Positions 3,001 to 51,014 of a DNA stretch of 64,000 nucleotides are shown in pieces. The notes under the pieces were generated by a model that was not told the DNA's origin, made no database searches, and saw only the letters and a program-made list of their open reading frames with translations. This DNA is from Fimbriosthenelais zetlandica (taxonomy: Eukaryota): assembly GCA_977030845.1 (NCBI GenBank), contig OZ365116.1, positions 15,624,001-15,688,000 of the forward strand, given 5' to 3'. Both the position numbers and the translations under genes were made by a program. Numbering within the stretch: the stretch's first letter is position 1; the number at the start of each line of letters is the position of its first letter.

Positions 3001-3538
3001 ATGCCATGTACACTTAAGATTGGAGGCTGATAAAAACAGGAATAGCTCGGTCTGTAACAATATACTGATTGTACTGGGCCTTAACAGACATGTTTGCTTG
3101 TATTTCTTATCTTTGGTTCAACAAAGGTGCGTTTTCGATCATGGCACACGTGCATGACCAAATATAAAGTATTTCAATGTGATTATGAACTAGTAGCTCA
3201 AGGATCTTTGAAGAATTCCATTTTAGCAAACGGTTTTCAAACAAAAGGAGTTTGTCTTCAAAGGATGTTGTTGACGAATTCTATTGTCATCCTCATCTTA
3301 GTTATAGATTGTCACAGTAACAAGCCTTGTCTTTTGAATTTTAATATTTAAAATCATAGACAAATAATTCAGATATATAGGGTGAGGTCATTCTTGTGTA
3401 CCAACTGATAACATATGCAATAATTTGGCAGCAATCTTGAATGCAATCTCAAAGATGCTCCATGAATCCAATCAGTATCATGTATAATAAACCTATGTGT
3501 TAACTGTTTCTGACGCTGAGACCATTTGAATTTTGCAG

Positions 3539-15977
<12,439 letters not shown>

Positions 15978-36005: not shown

Positions 36006-39000
36006 GTCAGTATCTTACATTCATCCATCAGCCAACAATCTCATTTGTCTCACTTAACTAGAACAAACAGATCAAAAGTAAGGTCAGCTATAACACTGTA
36101 CTATATGCTTGGGAGATATTGTGATATTGCATATATTACTTCCCTTGATGAGATTGAATGTAAATATTAAATGTACTCGTTTCCCTTTTCATTAAGATTC
36201 TGACAAAGAGCCTGGCGGGGCAGTAATAATATCACCGACTAAACACCCACAGACCATGGAGAATGGACCAAGTGGTGGCACAGAACAACTGTCAAACAGT
36301 GACAGTAAGGATGTCAACATTGACTTCTCCCACATGCAAGATACATCATCAACAGGTTCCAAGGGCAAGTCAGACCCACTGTGCACCAACCCGAGCATGG
36401 GTTCTTCACCCTATGTACGGCTGGAGCACCCCGCGGACAAAAGTGCCATGCTTTCCTTTATAGGAAGCGTAACGTTGCTGATAATTGCCCTGATCGTCTT
36501 CTGCCCAGTGTTCACATTTGTCATAATTGGCCTGCCTATTGCTGTTCTTGTCAGACAGTGTATGTTATGCTGTTGTTGTGCCAAACCCCGGAGGACCTGT
36601 TTGTGCTGTTGCTCTCCTGTGGTCAGTCATTCAGATTCGGTCTGGCTGCATGACACCTGTTTTAACCGAACTATCCTCCAAGGTCTTGTGACAATGGAGA
36701 AGGGACTTGACCTGGAGCGGATCAAAAATCTCATACATGCAAAATTAGTGGGCGGAGAGGATGCAAGGGGGAGGCTACTGTATCCAAAATTAACTCAGAA
36801 AGTGGTGCCTCTCTCTTCAGGCTTCATGTGGGAGCAAGATGACAACTTCAACATGGATAAACACATATATAACCTTCCTGCAGATCTCAAAACTAAAGCT
36901 GATCTTCAGAAGTACATTGCTGATATGTCTAGTCAGGAACTACCATGGGAGAGACCGCTATGGTGTATACAAGTTCTAGAGTCGTTTGGTGACAAGAAAG
37001 ACACGGTAGTCATCATTCGGATACACCAATGTCTGTGTGATGGTATATCTCTGTTAAATGTATTCCTTAGTTCATTAGTGGAGGAATATTCACTATACAA
37101 CAACAAACCAAGATATGGTCGAGGGACTTTCTTACTTAATACATTCCGTGCTATCGCCATGGGACCCCTTGTGTTCCTGCAGAAGTGGCTTTTCACAAGG
37201 AAGGACTATAATTTAATACATGCATCACCTCGGACAGGGAAAAAGGTGGTGGCTTGGTCAGAACCCTTCAGCTATAGAAAGGCCTTAAGGATTAAACAAG
37301 TGACCAGGAGCACATTAAATGATGTATTATTATCAGCAGCGGCAGGGAGTATAAGGACTTATTTCCAGAGTAAAGGAGTGAATAATCCATACAATATTCA
37401 GGCCAGTATCCCGGTTGACTTACGCACCAGAAGCAATGACAGTGCCATGAAATCCCAAACCACCCTTGTAGGGATCAACCTACCCACCAACACAGAGGGA
37501 GCTATACCTAGGTTATGGCAGATCAAACAAAGCATGGACCATTTGAAGAAATCAGCCGATTCTTTAGTCCTCTATGGTGCGCAATGGTTATTGGTTCATA
37601 TTTTACCAGTGTGTCTATGGCAAAGGATCTTGTCAAGTATTAGAGGAAACAGTACATGTATCATTGCTAACTTGCCTGGTCCGGAGAGTAACATTGCCTT
37701 TGCTACACGTCAGGTGCGGACTATGTTATCACTGCTACCACCACCCGATGAGGCGGCATTGTGTATATCATTCCTTACCTATGGTGAACAACTGCGTATG
37801 TCTGTGATAGCTGATCAAGGCGCCATAACAGATCCTACCATTCTTGCCAAAGACTTCGTTGTACAGGTAAGTTCTCAAACGATTATTGTTATGACACAAT
37901 TCACTGCACGTACTCAAGTAACACTGAATCAGCAGTGTTTGTCTAAGATGCCACGCCCTTAACTGTCTATCCTTTGATGCTTTAGATGGATAATTTTTAA
38001 ATGCAAAATAAGCACGTTTCATTTCATCATGAATAACTATCAATGTGGAGGGGAATTTTCCAATTTTTCAGTCTTGAAAATACAGTGGAAGTGAGACCTG
38101 ATAACTTCAAGTTTTGATTTCACACACCAGTTGCCTACCTCTGGTTAACAATGTTTATAGGTGATAGCTGGGATGATTATATCTTTCAGATGGAGAAGCT
38201 TTCTCACCTGTTGGCCCACCGCAGGATTCCAGGTGAACATCCAGGGCGGCGCTTTGATCTACATGATGACGGTCTACAGAGGGAACCCACCGTGGAGGAG
38301 GTGAGTGAGCAGGGAGGCTGGGGTTTGGCCAATACAGAACTCGACAAATAAATCAAGAGTTCTGTTAATAAATAAGCTGTCTGGCCTTACAGTGACCCTG
38401 TGTACTGTAAACCATGACATATCTGCTGCTCGCGAGGCCTTATACATTTTTCACGTGACAAGAGTCAGTAGATCGTAAGGGCTATTACTATTACTGGTTC
38501 CATGAACAGACTGATCCCAGAAATACCAACACCACACACGAACACACTTTACTTAGTTGTACAACTACTCGTTTCCATTTGTGTAATTCATATATGAATT
38601 GATTCACTCTCATATTCTGCCACAAAGTGAAAGAGAGCAACAGAATTGATGTTTACAGTATCCCAATATCCCAATTCTTTGTATAAGGATGATTACAAAC
38701 TGGTAGATTTAGTATATTATTTTGTTTGAAGTTTCCCCCAATCTATGTTCTCAGATTCCTTTTGTTATAGATATAGAACAATACAATATATTGCAGCATT
38801 TAGTGCCGTCTCTAAACTATGACCCCATGCTTCCCCTTCCCCTAGTGCCTCAATATATTCTGTTTGACGTAATAAGTTGGATATCATCATGGTATTGATA
38901 TGGTATCATGGTATTGATATGGTATCATGGTATTGGTCACACTTCCATCTCTGATAATAACGCATCAAAACTGCTTTGGATTGATCAGAAAATGGTGGGT

Positions 39001-42000: not shown

Positions 42001-45000
42001 TATAGGCATTGCTAAGGGGAGGAAATCTCATTTGTCTGACTCTATTGCTCTGCAATACATTTTTGGGGATTCCAGCCATAAATAATAGCCTGGGATTTAA
42101 TGCAAGAAATGTGCTTTACACAATGGTAATTCTACTGCTCACATTTTCTCTGGAAACCAAGCTGATTCCCCGATCATAATGCTGGCATATATGATGGTGT
42201 GTATTATATTCCAAAATGGAAATTTTATCAAACGGCTTGTTCTGTCAAATTTCCCATATAGATGAAGAACTAAGTCACTTATCCAAGCCCATCAAGCCAA
42301 TAATACATGGCAGAAACTGTCCATATTGCATGGCCTTTCCTCCATTTAGACTCTCAATGGAATGGATAATTTATAGAGGAATGCCCTGTGTCATCACCAC
42401 TCTCATCTCTAACAAGACTGCATGTAGAGTGATGATTCTGAGTGTGTAGATTAGTTGCCTAGAATTAAGCACCTCTGCCATGGGAATGACTTACAGATAT
42501 ATAATACAAATATGTATATTCACGCCACAAATGAGTATTTACATTCAATAAGGTTGCTTCAGGCACATTTTTGTTAATTGCGAAATAAGATAACTGATAA
42601 CTGATTGCTAGATCAGACTATCAAGAAGTAATGCTGCACAAAATATAGTGTCCTATTTCTTAATGGTTATAGATGTAATGACTTATATGTCAATAACATC
42701 GTTAATACATGTATAATTAAGATGTATTGCATAGAAACTGATCAATTATATATCATTCATTAATTACTATTACTAGCAATCACAGGACTAGTTTTCATAG
42801 CTTCATTGATGACACATTTCTCTACCACGGATCACATTCAAACTTGTACCGAGTTGTTTTTCATCCTTTTTGGGTGCATATTCATTTTCTCATTTGGAAA
42901 TAAGCACATATAATCTTTCCTTGCACTTTCTATTCAGGTTTATCATTTACCTGGCATTCATGTTTTCATAAGGAAAAGAACCGTACTTTCTTATGTCATT
43001 CATTGACAATTATCTGCTTTATAAATCACGAGCAAATACAAGAAAATCAGTTTTATGCAATTTTAAATGTGGAAATATCCGTAAAACTGCATTCCAATTG
43101 ATAGAAGGAGCACTGAGTTATAATTTGAAGAATGACTGTATTGACAACCAGGGTACACTTGGACAGAGCGTTAAGTGCATTAGCTAGCATCCTTGATACT
43201 TTTGGCAGCTTTTAGTTATTAAGGGCAATGGGTGTAATCTGATAGGTAACTGGTCAAGAGCCTGACTTAGATGAGTTGGGGTAGACCTTGGAATGGTGCC
43301 GACTTCTCTGTCAGCGGCCTTTGGTCGGACTATTTTAATAACTCTGTCTAAAGGGTTGACACAAAGCTTTATTAACAATGTATGATGTGCACTGTGTAAC
43401 TTCCACCAAGTCTGGCCGCAGTACTAGCAAGTATATAATTATGTCATCTTATATGAGTAAAAGCTTCCATCTATGGAATTCAATGTGACATGATTAAATC
43501 ACATTAAAAGGAAGACTTATTGGAAAACCTCCAAATAAATGCATTTTCTCATTGAGGAGAGTATTAAATATTGAGGGATTGAAGACAACTTATTCAGATG
43601 TATAAATGACTGTGATTTTGCTCTCAGGAGAATGATGACGACGGTGAATTAAGACGTTCATCTTATCGTAAACGTACCGTGTCGGGTTCATCACGACGTT
43701 CATCCTCCATCTCTGCTAGTGCATCAACAAACAGGCCTCTCACCACCACCTCTCCCCCTCATTCTGCACACTCTTCTAGTCCCATCACTTCAAGGCCAAA
43801 CTCCCCCAGTGCAATGTCAGCACCGGTAAGTTTCCCTAGTTCAGGACCTCTCACCCAGAACCCCATCCTCTTCCCCAGCCGTCAACGTCATCCCTATCGC
43901 CGTTTCCACACTTTCCACTCTCCTCACTCTCCCACCTCCCGCATGCATGCAGACTCCCTGTTTATCATTGCACCCAAAGCATCTCCTTCAACAGCATCAG
44001 CCTCAATGGTTCCACTAACAACTGGCTTGAAAAACACTGGTTCAGTGCCTGATGGTCCAGGTGTTCATAGTCAGACTGGGTTCTCCACCAGTGTGACCAA
44101 GGAGGCCAAGGCAGCAGTACACTCAAATGCCTCAGCCATCAGTGGTGGTGTGCTCCAGGCACGGGACTTACTCTCTCAACAGGGCACTCACTCCCAGTCT
44201 TGGCCCTCTTTGGTAAGTTTGCCAATTACCTCACCACATTTCAACAATATTTAAAATAATCAATAAATTTATACAGACACACATTTCAACAATATTTAAA
44301 ATAATCAATAAATTTATACAGACAAGATTAATAACTTTGTTGACAGATAAGCTGCATTACTTTGTACTTATAAATATCTCTGACATAAATATCTTTCGAC
44401 AACAGAAAATAGATGGAAAAGATCACTTACTGGTTGTGTCCACTGTCAATGTCTTCCTCTGAATCCCTCTAGCGACGTCTTGTGTGACAAGTCGTTTGAG
44501 GTCATGCAAATTCGGACAAAGTTAAAAACATTGATTTTCATGCCACTTTCGTTTGTCCATCATCCACATGCCCTGTCAAGCGACGAAAAATTCGGTTCAG
44601 GTCGTTAATGATTCAGTTGGGAAAAAACGATAGTGGATACAGCTAGTCAAACATTTTAAAATGAAGAGCATTCTCTAAAAGTTTTTATGCAGCTGTATCA
44701 AGGATACTATATACAATACCGATACTCTACTATCTTTGGGTGAATGGCATATACATGACATTGATGACATTCCCTATCTTATTTCCCAGTGAACCTCTCC
44801 CAGACCTCATCTTGTGTGATGTATAGTTTCATGGAACTATTGCTATAGCTTCTATTACTTTAAGCCTATTCCTTTCACTTTATGTATAGATCTGCAGATC
44901 CTTAGCCTATATATCTGTTCCCTGCCCCTAGCTTTTATTATTATGCTGCCCGAAAAATTATTTCTACAACAAATCCTTTCTCCTGCATTCTATCATCTTC

Positions 45001-47863: not shown

Positions 47864-48376
47864 CTACCTGCGGTACCAAGTTTCTCCCTTTCTCAGTAAT
47901 GCCTTGTCCTGGGCCTGACACCAACAGTCAGGTCCTGATCCTAAACACCAGCTATTGAAAGAGGTGCGACACTGCATGTCAGGACAGCAGGGTGGGGAAT
48001 TAGCACCATCACACTGCTGTCCTACCCTCAGACACGAGGCTCTACCCGGCTGATGGCTGCCCTGAAAACATACACACCAACTGCTGATTATTCCGAGAAA
48101 ATCCCTAAAAAATTGATTACCATAGTATTTTCTCTCGAGAATTGAACAATTCAACAGGTATCATGGGAAAACATGTATACTTACTAATGTAATGGCCGGC
48201 CGGAAATAGCGCCTTAAACTGGACACTGATTGAGCCCGCTGAAGGTATGGAGGGCTGCTCTCGAAGGGAGAGAAAGGTTTTTGTAAAGATGCAGTCACGT
48301 GCACATTGAAGACAATAAGGAGGAGGAGAGGGAGAGGAGGAAATGGAAGAAAGGCGAGATGGACGCGCCCCATCAT
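47864..48376 (-). CDS. Secreted 8-cysteine knottin (agatoxin-like peptide) precursor, 129 aa; complement(join(47864..48061,48185..48376))
   Basis: Two ORF-track fragments join through a phase-0 intron (TTA|gtaagt ... gttttcag|GGC). Product: signal MMGRVHLAFLPFPPLPLLLLIVFNVHVTA, propeptide, then R-ASCLRVGQQCDGANSPPCCPDMQCRTSFNSWCLGSGPDCWCQ...WYRR-stop. Framework is C-C-CC-C-C-C-C. Confidence 0.88.
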
Positions 48377-49225
48377 GGTTAGGGCCCTCTCTTGTTGCTT
48401 TTTTCCCCTCAGGTGAAACCTGTCAGTAAATGGAAATAATAGCAGTATTTAGAGCAATCTTAGTAAATGATCGTAATTAAGTGTGGGTACTACCATTCAT
48501 GAAACTCAATGTACACCACAAAAGACAAGCCACATTTTGCCAGGTCAGATGAAGATTCTTGTTATTTACATAGGCTCGACTTTTGGAACGAATCACATAG
48601 GTCAACAAAATTCAATTTATTTCTACAAAATGTGTTTTACATTTCGCGTCTTTATAATAAGAGTGAAATGAGCCACTTCTCGTTATAGTGTTGTTATGTT
48701 ACTCCATGTTTTGAGCGACAAGAAGAGAATAAATAGAAAGTCTGGAATGGGAATCAATGTACAAATGCTCCAAAATAGATGTAATTGCTCCCATATAGTA
48801 TCTGGCGCACAGTTAATAGCAGCCCTGGGACCGCCAGAAGCCAATCATCTGCCTCTCTATTTTTCAAATCTTGTCGCAGGTGAACTTTGTTTCTTAGAAA
48901 TGTTATTCCGTAAAAGTCCATATAGAATTTAATCAATATGGGGATTCTCAGAAAAGTAAATAAAATTTGTAAATTTAGAAAAATAAGAGTGGTATTCTCC
49001 TGTCTATGGACTAGCCCTCAGAGTGAACAAGAGTAGTATATGAAAATGGCTATTTTTCCATGAATATATAAAATGGTGACTTAGGCCTAATAGCAATAAC
49101 AACACCCACGGCATATTTATGCTTAAAATACAAAGATATAATAGTTTACTTATAATTAATTTTCGATGAAGTACTTTCTATCCATAAACCTATGATAAAA
49201 GTCAACATAATAGAAAAAAACTCAC

Positions 49226-49305
49226 CTTTTTATCGTCCAATCTGTTGTAAATAGAATGGCGGGTTTCGCTCCTGCGTTCCTCCGTTCTATGTCAATGTAA
49301 ATCTG
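49226..49305 (-). other. Non-coding first exon of the knottin gene (TSS approximate)
   Basis: Donor AAG|gtgagt at 49226, matching acceptor ttactgacag| at 48419, and located ~30 nt downstream of a TATA box. Confidence 0.7.
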
Positions 49306-49328
49306 CCGCAATCGGTTGCGTGGCTGGC

Positions 49329-49432
49329 TTTTATATAAGGCAGGCTGCCGTTCAAGTAGGGTTTCCTGGCCAATCAGCCATGGGGGCTGTTCTCAATAAA
49401 TATGCTGAACATGCAGGACGATAGGGGGCGGG
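49329..49432 (-). promoter_or_regulatory. Knottin gene core promoter: TATA (TATATAAAA, 49337-49329), CCAAT box (GGCCAATCAG, core 49370-49374), GC box (GGGGCGGG, 49425-49432)
   Basis: Three consensus elements in the classical order and spacing upstream of the first exon. Confidence 0.72.
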
Positions 49433-49714: not shown

Positions 49715-49885
49715 TAGTACACTACTAGCTCGTTTTCATGCACTATACTAGCTTCACTATTTCCCCGTAGTGAACGCTCTCGAAGTCGCTCCAGACTGAT
49801 GGTGCACTGTAGTCGTTTTACCAGGGTTCGAAACCTCTCCTCCTGTGCCAGAAGCAGGCACGTTACCACTGAGCTATGGAGATCG
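49715..49885 (-). mobile_element. tRNA-derived SINE (degenerate); 3' extent uncertain
   Basis: The - strand reads CTCCA-TAGCTCAGTGG (A box)...AGGTTTCGAACCCT (B-box-like) at tRNA-like spacing (head 49880-49821). Acceptor and anticodon arms do not close, so it is not a functional tRNA. Confidence 0.65.
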
Positions 49886-51014
49886 CTGATATAGAGGGTG
49901 GGAAACGAGGGTTTTATCTTGAGAGTGGCCAAGTGACCTCATGTACCGACCTCCTAGGAGTCACATGGGGGTGGTTAGTAGGTCAGTCCAACGAGTGGTC
50001 AGTCTACTACCAAGCCTCCCCCTGTTGCTCCTGGTCCCACCATCCTATAGTGAGGTGTAAATCCATCACTTGTAACTCATCAAAAGGAGAATTACTCATT
50101 GAGTTTCTTTTTTATAATCATTCTGTGTCATGCACACATCGATGGTGGGATGGGATATATGTCTTATGTCACCATTATAGTCTACATTATGGCACTGAGG
50201 GGGCTGTGGGATGGTGTAAATATGTCGTAGAGTGAAGGAGTTCACTACTTGCCTACTCATGAGACGTAATGCACGACCCCTATACGCCCACCCACCTCCC
50301 ACCAACCTTCTCCACCCTTCAACTGACTCTCTTACCCCAGATATACCTCATCCTTCCTCCACTGACCCTATAGGGTTGTAATGCGAGTGCATTATTATAA
50401 CCTCCTACTGTACATATTGCGAGGAGAAAACCCTAAAGTATAAGGTTATGTAATCAAAGTTAGTTGTATCATTTTCACTTCCAAATGTAGGGTAATATTT
50501 CGGTGAAAGTAGAAATTGGCATAGAAGAGGAGTCGAAGAACATAAGTCCAATGTGTATAAAGAGCGTGCACTATTACTTTCCACTCATCCAGAGAAGGAG
50601 GGGTAGGGAGGAGGGGAGGTGGGGTGAATCTGGTGATAGGGAGAAGCTCTCGTTTATATGTGGGGTGCACCATTGAGTTGGTGCTGTAATGGGAATGACA
50701 TGTTATGCCTGATTATTTCAGGCTCTCCTTATTACTCTAGTAAGAATTGGTTGTTCCTCCTGGATAAATGAGATAAATAAAGAAACGAAACAATTCTAAT
50801 GTAGATGTATCCCACAAACAGGGAATCAAATCCCATTGAAGTCATGAAATGATTGCATGGAATGAATCCTTGGAATACAAATTAACAATAGTGACCCAAT
50901 AAGTTATAACCAATCTATGTAAAAATGAAGGAAGACAATAACAGTGACCCAGCTGTCTCATGGAAGTCAACGCTAACTAGGCTGCAGTGACCTCAATAAA
51001 TGACCTAGCTCGAA

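Follow-up and report, generated by a model that had tools for sequence, protein, structure and literature searches.

A probable divergent member of the CLCCY propeptide family encoded in the genome of Fimbriosthenelais zetlandica

Introduction

A stretch of genomic DNA from Fimbriosthenelais zetlandica (NCBI GenBank assembly GCA_977030845.1, contig OZ365116.1, positions 15,624,001 to 15,688,000 of the forward strand), which is 64,000 nucleotides long and is referred to below as 'the window', contains on its minus strand, at positions 49432-47864, a short gene for a secreted, knottin-type peptide with eight cysteines. The reading that we favor, and to which we would assign a probability of about 0.72, is that this gene is intact, and that the peptide specified by its C-terminal exon is a divergent representative of CLCCY, a propeptide family of lophotrochozoans. 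The evidence that carries this assignment consists of the cysteine framework of the peptide, its homology to CLCCY at the level of a family profile, and the presence of a phase-0 intron ahead of the cysteine-rich exon. An initial reading of the same DNA (hereafter, the original prediction) had instead described the product as a new, agatoxin-like variant of the inhibitor cystine knot (ICK), in which the loop between the fifth and sixth cysteines was expanded by an aromatic insertion.

CLCCY was named in Platynereis in 2013, as a lophotrochozoan proneuropeptide family (Conzelmann et al., PMC3890597), and is known from annelids, molluscs, brachiopods and phoronids (PMC8557429; De Oliveira et al. 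2019, PMC6425005; PMC8398477), with none found in nemerteans by Thiel et al. 2021 (PMC8557429). The supplement to the latter study lists CLCCY as a separate family, directly after the CCWamides, and examples of its members include the precursors from Platynereis (V5TDJ5), Capitella (ELU16055.1) and scallop (XP_021368903.1). A neural context for the family has been described repeatedly (PMC3890597, PMC5747525, PMC5688751, PMC8398477): in situ expression of the Platynereis gene was documented in 3-day-old larvae in a neuropeptide-mapping study, transcripts of the earthworm gene were found in nerve cord, and the oyster gene was detected at a low level in visceral ganglia (PMC8398477). No receptor for the family was found in the literature surveyed.

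The predicted precursor

The predicted precursor is 129 residues in length and is specified by two coding exons. The first of these (exon 2, 48419-48185 on the minus strand) follows an acceptor that reads ..ctgacag|G, opens with 43 nt of 5' untranslated region (UTR), and then runs for 64 codons, from an ATG at 48376 to a phase-0 donor (TTA|GTAAGT). The second (the coding part of exon 3, 48061-47864, minus strand) begins at the acceptor tgttttcag|G and comprises 65 codons and a TAG stop, which together encompass a lead-in sequence, the cysteine-rich domain and a tail. Because exon 2 ends, and exon 3 starts, on complete codons, the intervening sequence (intron 2, 123 nt, 48184-48062, GTAAGT..tgttttcag) is in phase 0 and its removal would join two flanking frames that are both open and in phase; the resulting junction reads ..ITL|GSH.., without a basic residue. 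Splicing of the exons in this manner is predicted from the appearance of these sites.

The initial 29 codons of the reading frame (48376-48290, within exon 2) specify a signal-like N-terminus, in which MMGR, with its single arginine, is followed by a hydrophobic run of 19 residues and then by ..VTA|S; this segment was assessed by eye using the (-3,-1) rule, and displays small residues at both of those positions. Behind it lie a pro-region of 35 residues that contains one RR site, and then the nine-residue lead-in at the start of exon 3, which ends in GR|AS before the first cysteine (C1). The eight-cysteine core, as read from the translation (C1 to C8, 48034-47918, minus strand), displays the CLCCY-type spacing C-x6-C-x7-CC-x4-C-x7-C-x6-C-x-C, with W-C-L around C6 and C-W-C at C7-C8. 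The tail that follows C8 contains an internal RK, and then ..TWY before a terminal RR, with no glycine at this end.

This architecture suggests a route of maturation for the small secreted precursor. The signal peptide would route the precursor into the secretory pathway and then be removed, after which convertases might cut at the RR of the pro-region, at the RK that follows the domain, and possibly at the single arginine of GR|AS; at the latter site, cleavage would give rise to a further peptide, of 13 residues and with a C-terminal glycine, which (speculatively) could be a substrate for amidation. A carboxypeptidase would then be expected to trim the terminal RR, and the product would be a disulfide-rich knottin of approximately 49 residues, in which the spacing of a six-cysteine knot is supplemented by a C-x-C pair. 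By analogy with the Platynereis and earthworm CLCCY peptides, such a product may act as an extracellular, neuropeptide- or hormone-like ligand, and a secreted, neuropeptide-like knottin appears to be its likeliest role.

Assignment to the CLCCY family

The comparator sequences (40-123 letters in length) were taken from the supplements to PMC8557429. Twelve CLCCY sequences from that source display C-x6-C-x6-CC-x4-C-x7-C-x6-C-x-C as their usual spacing, with exceptions in the form of a 10-residue second loop in Terebratalia and of five residues between C6 and C7 in a phoronid and a brachiopod. In the CLCCY precursors, which are 84-123 residues long, a signal peptide and a short pro-region precede the one cysteine-rich peptide at the C-terminus. 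The residue immediately before C6 is aromatic in 10 of the 12 (it is leucine in Pinctada and threonine in Acanthochitona), whereas in all 12 the residue that separates C7 from C8 is hydrophobic or aromatic, the tail is non-amidated, and an asparagine is found at C5+2 and a glutamate at C7-2; the two latter invariances were observed here and do not represent a published definition.

The window peptide fits the corresponding general framework (C-x6-C-x6..10-CC-x4-C-x7-C-x5..6-C-x-C) and its precursor has the same layout, with one cysteine-rich peptide behind a signal peptide and short pro-region. It further shares with the family an aromatic residue before C6, a leucine after C6 (a position held by Leu, Ile or Val among family members), a hydrophobic or aromatic residue between C7 and C8, and a tyrosine in a non-amidated tail (taken here as the motif behind the family name), as well as, with the annelid members in particular, the sequence CCP-x-M-x-C. 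It differs from them in the length of the C2-C3 loop (seven residues, versus six in most members and 10 in Terebratalia), in its nine-residue lead-in with a single arginine, where the family has a di- or tribasic site adjoining C1, and in its longer tail with an internal RK.

Pairwise and profile comparisons both connect the peptide to this family. When compared by BLASTP, the window peptide matches the precursors from Platynereis (E 3e-6), Capitella (5e-6) and scallop (6e-5) without gaps from C3C4 to C8, and the Capitella match reaches into the tail, where ..SFYR is aligned against ..TWYR. When the Platynereis CLCCY precursor was used as the query in a word-indexed search, that protein alone was retrieved, and the family profiles were therefore built from sequences in the PMC8557429 supplement, using eight for CLCCY (A1) and eight for the agatoxin-like peptides, or ALP/CCWamides (A2). 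An hhalign comparison to the CLCCY profile yielded a probability of 95.2% (E 2.9e-8), with all eight cysteines aligned and a single gap of one residue. The corresponding hidden Markov model (HMM) assigned 28.3 bits (a local score) to the window peptide, as compared to 4.1 bits for a scorpion ALP and to -1 to 14 bits for members of each family scored against the other. Shuffled peptides in which the cysteines were held fixed averaged 8 +/- 6 bits against the CLCCY model, and the real score was reached by 1 of 2000 such shuffles in one run and by 0 of 2000 in another.

The gene structures provide independent support for the CLCCY assignment, drawn from two comparator genes. In the Capitella gene (ELU16055.1), a 60-nt phase-0 intron directly precedes the C1 codon (0 codons intervening), while in the scallop gene (XP_021368903.1) both introns are in phase 0 and the last is located one codon before C1. 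The window gene likewise harbors its phase-0 intron shortly ahead of the final cysteine-rich exon, nine codons before C1, and in all three genes the last exon holds the entire cysteine-rich peptide and its tail. On the basis of the profile scores, the peptide belongs with CLCCY, and not with the ALP/CCWamides, at the divergent edge of the family.

During the examination of the Capitella teleta locus (KB293367.1, stretch L003, 3001-3581), it was noted that the first 21 residues of the ELU16055.1 model are derived from an upstream exon, and that a Met-Met start and signal-like hydrophobic run are found at position 3213 of that stretch, immediately after an acceptor-like cttcag. The annotated N-terminus thus looks over-extended; the true layout would resemble that of the window gene, with an upstream exon joined immediately ahead of the ATG.

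Organization and uniqueness of the gene

The original prediction had described a promoter, a non-coding exon, a signal/propeptide exon and a mature-domain exon, and all of these are found in the sequence, on the minus strand, with the promoter and exon 1 represented by matches to consensus sequences. Those matches consist of a GC-box-like element (GGGGGCGGG, 49424-49432, with no strand assigned) approximately 120 nt upstream of the predicted transcription start, a CCAAT box (49370-49374, reading CCAAT on the plus strand and ATTGG on the gene strand) approximately 40 nt upstream of the TATA box, the TATA box itself (TATATAAAAG, 49337-49328, minus strand), and a predicted non-coding exon 1 of about 80 nt (~49305-49226, minus strand), which ends at the donor AAAAG|GTGAGT at 49225. 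The 5' end of that exon is approximate, having been placed some 25-30 nt after the TATA box. Exon 1 is followed by a predicted intron 1 of 806 nt (49225-48420, minus strand, GT..AG) with a 3' end that reads ..ctgacag. Downstream of the coding region, the first AATAAA after the stop codon on the gene strand (47609-47604), again a consensus match only, implies a 3' UTR of about 255-275 nt.

When the window is translated in all six frames, the eight-cysteine core is the sole ICK-like cysteine pattern to emerge. Among 400 simulations of that same DNA by a first-order Markov model, a six-cysteine pattern was generated in 7.5% of the runs and an eight-cysteine pattern in none. The gene region is present as a single copy in the window, and a repeat or mobile element was rejected as an explanation for it on the grounds of that uniqueness; an RNA gene was likewise rejected, with Rfam and tRNA scans of the whole window having returned no match.

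Relationship to inhibitor cystine knots of venoms

The first six cysteines of the window peptide look like those of a classical inhibitor cystine knot in their spacing, which over this segment (C-x6-C-x5..7-CC-x4-C-x6..7-C) is shared with the theraphotoxin-type ICK toxins of spiders (Toxin_12, PF07740, and Toxin_35, PF10530) and with the O-superfamily conotoxins (PF02950). Other CLCCY members match those families and their structures: among the eight that were compared to Pfam, Toxin_12 was matched by five, Toxin_35 by four, and Conotoxin by the Platynereis sequence. The CLCCY profile matched solved spider ICK toxins over C1-C6 (pi-hexatoxin-Hi1a at 1.1e-4, cyriotoxin-1a at 1.2e-4 and psalmotoxin at 5e-3), and also matched GTx1-15 and huwentoxin-I at weaker values. 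In view of these Pfam matches, the automatic UniRef names of two CLCCY proteins, 'Granulins domain-containing' for that of Octopus and 'EB domain-containing' for that of Capitella, are ill-fitting.

The toxins nevertheless differ from the window peptide in several respects. They contain six cysteines and end at C6, whereas the window peptide adds a C-x-C motif and a tail; its C7 and C8 might be paired either with one another or in an agatoxin-like manner (C3-C8 and C6-C7). They are also venom-gland products of arthropods and cone snails. Finally, the window peptide itself displays no Pfam match, and a phmmer search against PDB sequences returned noise only, with crambin (E 0.18) and a hybrid atracotoxin (0.39) as its best matches.

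Relationship to agatoxin-like peptides and Agouti

Agatoxin-like peptides, reportedly described by Sturm et al. in 2016, belong to the U8-agatoxin family. In the definition of Thiel et al. 2021 (PMC8557429), the ALP/CCWamides contain eight cysteines, an aromatic residue between C6 and C7, and an amidated, aromatic C-terminus; their genes usually have three coding exons, and a conserved phase-2 intron interrupts the codon for a basic cleavage residue ahead of the exon for the mature peptide. The window peptide resembles these peptides in its number of cysteines, in its C1-C5 spacing, in its terminal C-x6-C-x-C, in being derived from a small precursor of the neuropeptide type, and, when compared to arthropod ALPs, in a scattering of common residues (R, G, D, R and Q). 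That it might be an ALP/CCWamide whose C5-C6 loop has been expanded by a six-residue aromatic insertion is also suggested by a BLASTP match to a scorpion U8-agatoxin-like peptide (18 of 42 identities, E 0.003, with nine gap positions), which takes in S-C-x-R-x-G-x-x-C-D, CC-x4-C-R and C-x-C-Q.

Most of the evidence points away from that interpretation. The ALP spacing given in the original prediction, in which C5 and C6 are separated by a single residue, is borne out by the sequences of that family in the PMC8557429 supplement (8 of 8 aligned), and the corresponding loop in the window peptide contains seven residues. When aligned by hhalign to the ALP/CCWamide profile, the peptide required a gap of six residues and reached a probability of only 14% (E 0.002), and its score of 3.0 bits against the ALP/CCWamide HMM was equalled by 409 of 2000 shuffles with fixed cysteines. 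A tryptophan is found between C7 and C8, as in the hydrophobic CLCCY position, in place of the arginine or lysine of seven of the eight aligned ALP/CCWamides; most of the latter end in an aromatic residue and glycine (followed in some by a basic residue) for amidation, whereas the window peptide ends in ..TWYRR, with no Gly-basic signal behind its terminal aromatic residue. The gene has two coding exons and not three, and the intron before its mature exon is in phase 0, without a basic residue at the junction, and not in phase 2 within a basic codon. Membership in the ALP/CCWamides by way of a loop insertion is thus largely refuted by these comparisons, and we regard it as very improbable.

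Of the original prediction, therefore, what holds is the description of a complete, intact and spliced-looking gene for a secreted eight-cysteine knottin-type peptide, together with the cysteine spacing, the GR-AS sequence before C1, and the RK and RR sites after C8, each of which reads as claimed. The proposal of a newly inserted loop is not supported, given the profile results above and the fact that a seven-residue C5-C6 loop is standard in CLCCY, and neither is that of a new ICK variant. An already described family has essentially the same spacing, from which the window peptide departs only in its C2-C3 loop, a variable one, where it is longer by one residue. The CLCCY spacing having been published, what the peptide adds is a divergent sequence; its spacing is not novel, and it does not represent a new variant of the agatoxin-like type.

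The two families may themselves be distantly related. Their profiles match one another over C1-C5 only (hhalign probability 73%, E 3e-5), a similarity that could be cited in favor of an ALP/CCWamide assignment as well, and on that basis a distant common origin of CLCCY and the ALP/CCWamides is possible. The sole difference between their frameworks is the length of the C5-C6 loop.

A relationship to Agouti and AgRP was also considered, given that those proteins, like the window gene product, are made as secreted precursors of about 130 residues in which the C-terminal domain is knottin-like and ends in C-x6-C-x-C. The Agouti domain contains ten cysteines in a different spacing. This candidate was rejected, with the corresponding family (PF05039) being among those in Pfam that were unmatched at E<=10.

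Weighing of the CLCCY assignment and its alternatives

Several observations weigh against assignment of the gene to the CLCCY family. Only eight sequences stand behind each family profile, and when the CLCCY models were rebuilt in leave-one-out fashion, the window peptide scored 24-30 bits, at the bottom of a family range in which the held-out Terebratalia sequence reached 27.8 bits, Acanthochitona 39.3, and the remaining six 52-58. As seen in the alignment, its score is low because the otherwise invariant asparagine and glutamate are replaced, by threonine at C5+2 and by proline at C7-2 (with aspartate at C7-1). Direct searches returned no relative: nothing was matched in Pfam at E<=10 by the window peptide, the exon-2 peptide or a 96-residue open reading frame (ORF); a word-indexed search of 5.8 billion proteins gave zero candidates and hence no orthologue; a phmmer search of 1.84 billion cluster representatives gave two spurious matches only (both rejected as long repeat proteins in which the cysteines are unaligned); and a scan of metagenome contigs found no relative of the peptide. 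Moreover, at the locus in a related species that contains the orthologue (62% identity) of a neighboring acyltransferase gene, described in the next section, no knottin-like ORF is found within +/-10 kb. Models generated with AlphaFold2 were of low confidence, with values of the predicted local distance difference test (pLDDT) of 64.7 when the single sequence was used and of 62.8 when a four-row alignment was supplied, in which case the blocks of the cysteine core (residues 11-50) reached 67-73. A hairpin was predicted around C6 and C8, and a Foldseek comparison of either model to the PDB returned nothing below E 3. The peptide is thus absent from the searched protein collections and has no close relative there, and its gene is probably unannotated, as those collections hold nothing similar.

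The same observations bear on what else the gene might be. One option is a divergent paralogue within CLCCY, which has lost the invariant asparagine and glutamate and acquired a new target (for example, through defensive or predatory recruitment); another is the first CLCCY-type gene of a lineage for which the family is as yet unreported, as in the case of the nemerteans. We consider this pair of options possible, if unlikely. Somewhat less likely again would be a lineage-specific knottin employed in defense, predation or antimicrobial activity (in mucus, epidermis or a gland), whether it arose from a duplicate of CLCCY or reached the same framework by convergence. The loss of the invariant asparagine and glutamate, and the score at the edge of the family, would be expected of a paralogue under changed constraint, the same scaffold serves the ion-channel toxins of spiders and cone snails, and neuropeptides have been repeatedly recruited into venoms (Thiel et al., PMC8557429). 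Toxin genes, however, often occur in arrays, whereas neither tandem copies nor further ICK-like ORFs are present in the 64 kb window, and the layout of the precursor, its tail and its intron phase all agree with CLCCY. The failure to find an orthologue (in protein searches, at the related acyltransferase locus and in metagenome contigs), along with the alteration of two family-invariant residues, might also be taken as signs of a non-functional relic, or of a chance open frame that was never expressed. That explanation appears the least credible of all, given that both coding exons are open, in phase and bounded by near-consensus splice sites (GTAAGT and TTTTCAG), that a signal-like hydrophobic core lies shortly after the start codon, that all eight cysteines are intact, that TATA, CCAAT and GC-box elements are located at expected distances, that the eight-cysteine pattern arose in 0 of 400 simulations, and that the non-cysteine residues fit CLCCY better than do those of shuffled peptides.

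As a divergent member of CLCCY, the window gene adds a further sequence to what is a small, orphan neuropeptide family, and the changes at two otherwise invariant positions show that those residues are not essential for its scaffold. The phase-0 intron, found in three phyla-level samples, represents a simple genomic marker that separates CLCCY genes from those of the ALP/CCWamides, and the window locus and its relatives might help to establish whether both families arose from a single ancestor. How knottins or neuropeptides are currently understood to have evolved is unchanged by this gene.

Genomic surroundings

The sole recognizable neighbor of the gene is an intronless gene on the plus strand (36256-37962) that encodes a wax ester synthase/diacylglycerol acyltransferase (WS/DGAT) of 568 residues, with PF03007 and PF06974 domains. 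Its best relatives are two ENA/Logan proteins (84% and 62% identity), and its best named relatives are from Tubulanus (a nemertean, 47%), Owenia (an annelid, 44%) and two hemichordates (44%). Relatives at E <= 1e-62 are from animals, where named, and are joined by weaker (~24% identity) WS/DGAT proteins from JGI, ENA and NCBI collections. In a neighbor-joining tree, the clade that contains the WS/DGAT is sister to Owenia and Tubulanus, with the hemichordates outside, a position that agrees with the spiralian host to be expected of a CLCCY gene.

Several additional features of the window were also noted. Two ORFs flank the gene, one of 191 residues (43679-44254, plus strand) and another of 119 (49876-50235, plus strand), neither of which matches Pfam. 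A longer ORF of 466 residues, rich in serine, glycine, alanine and tyrosine, is located on the plus strand at 14577-15977. It falls within the one 2-kb bin of the window that is GC-rich (0.49), was matched neither in Pfam nor in the PDB, and could represent either a structural protein of low complexity or a frame that is open by chance in DNA of that composition. The hexamer AATAAA occurs 106 times in the whole window, as compared to 75 +/- 9 occurrences expected from shuffles.

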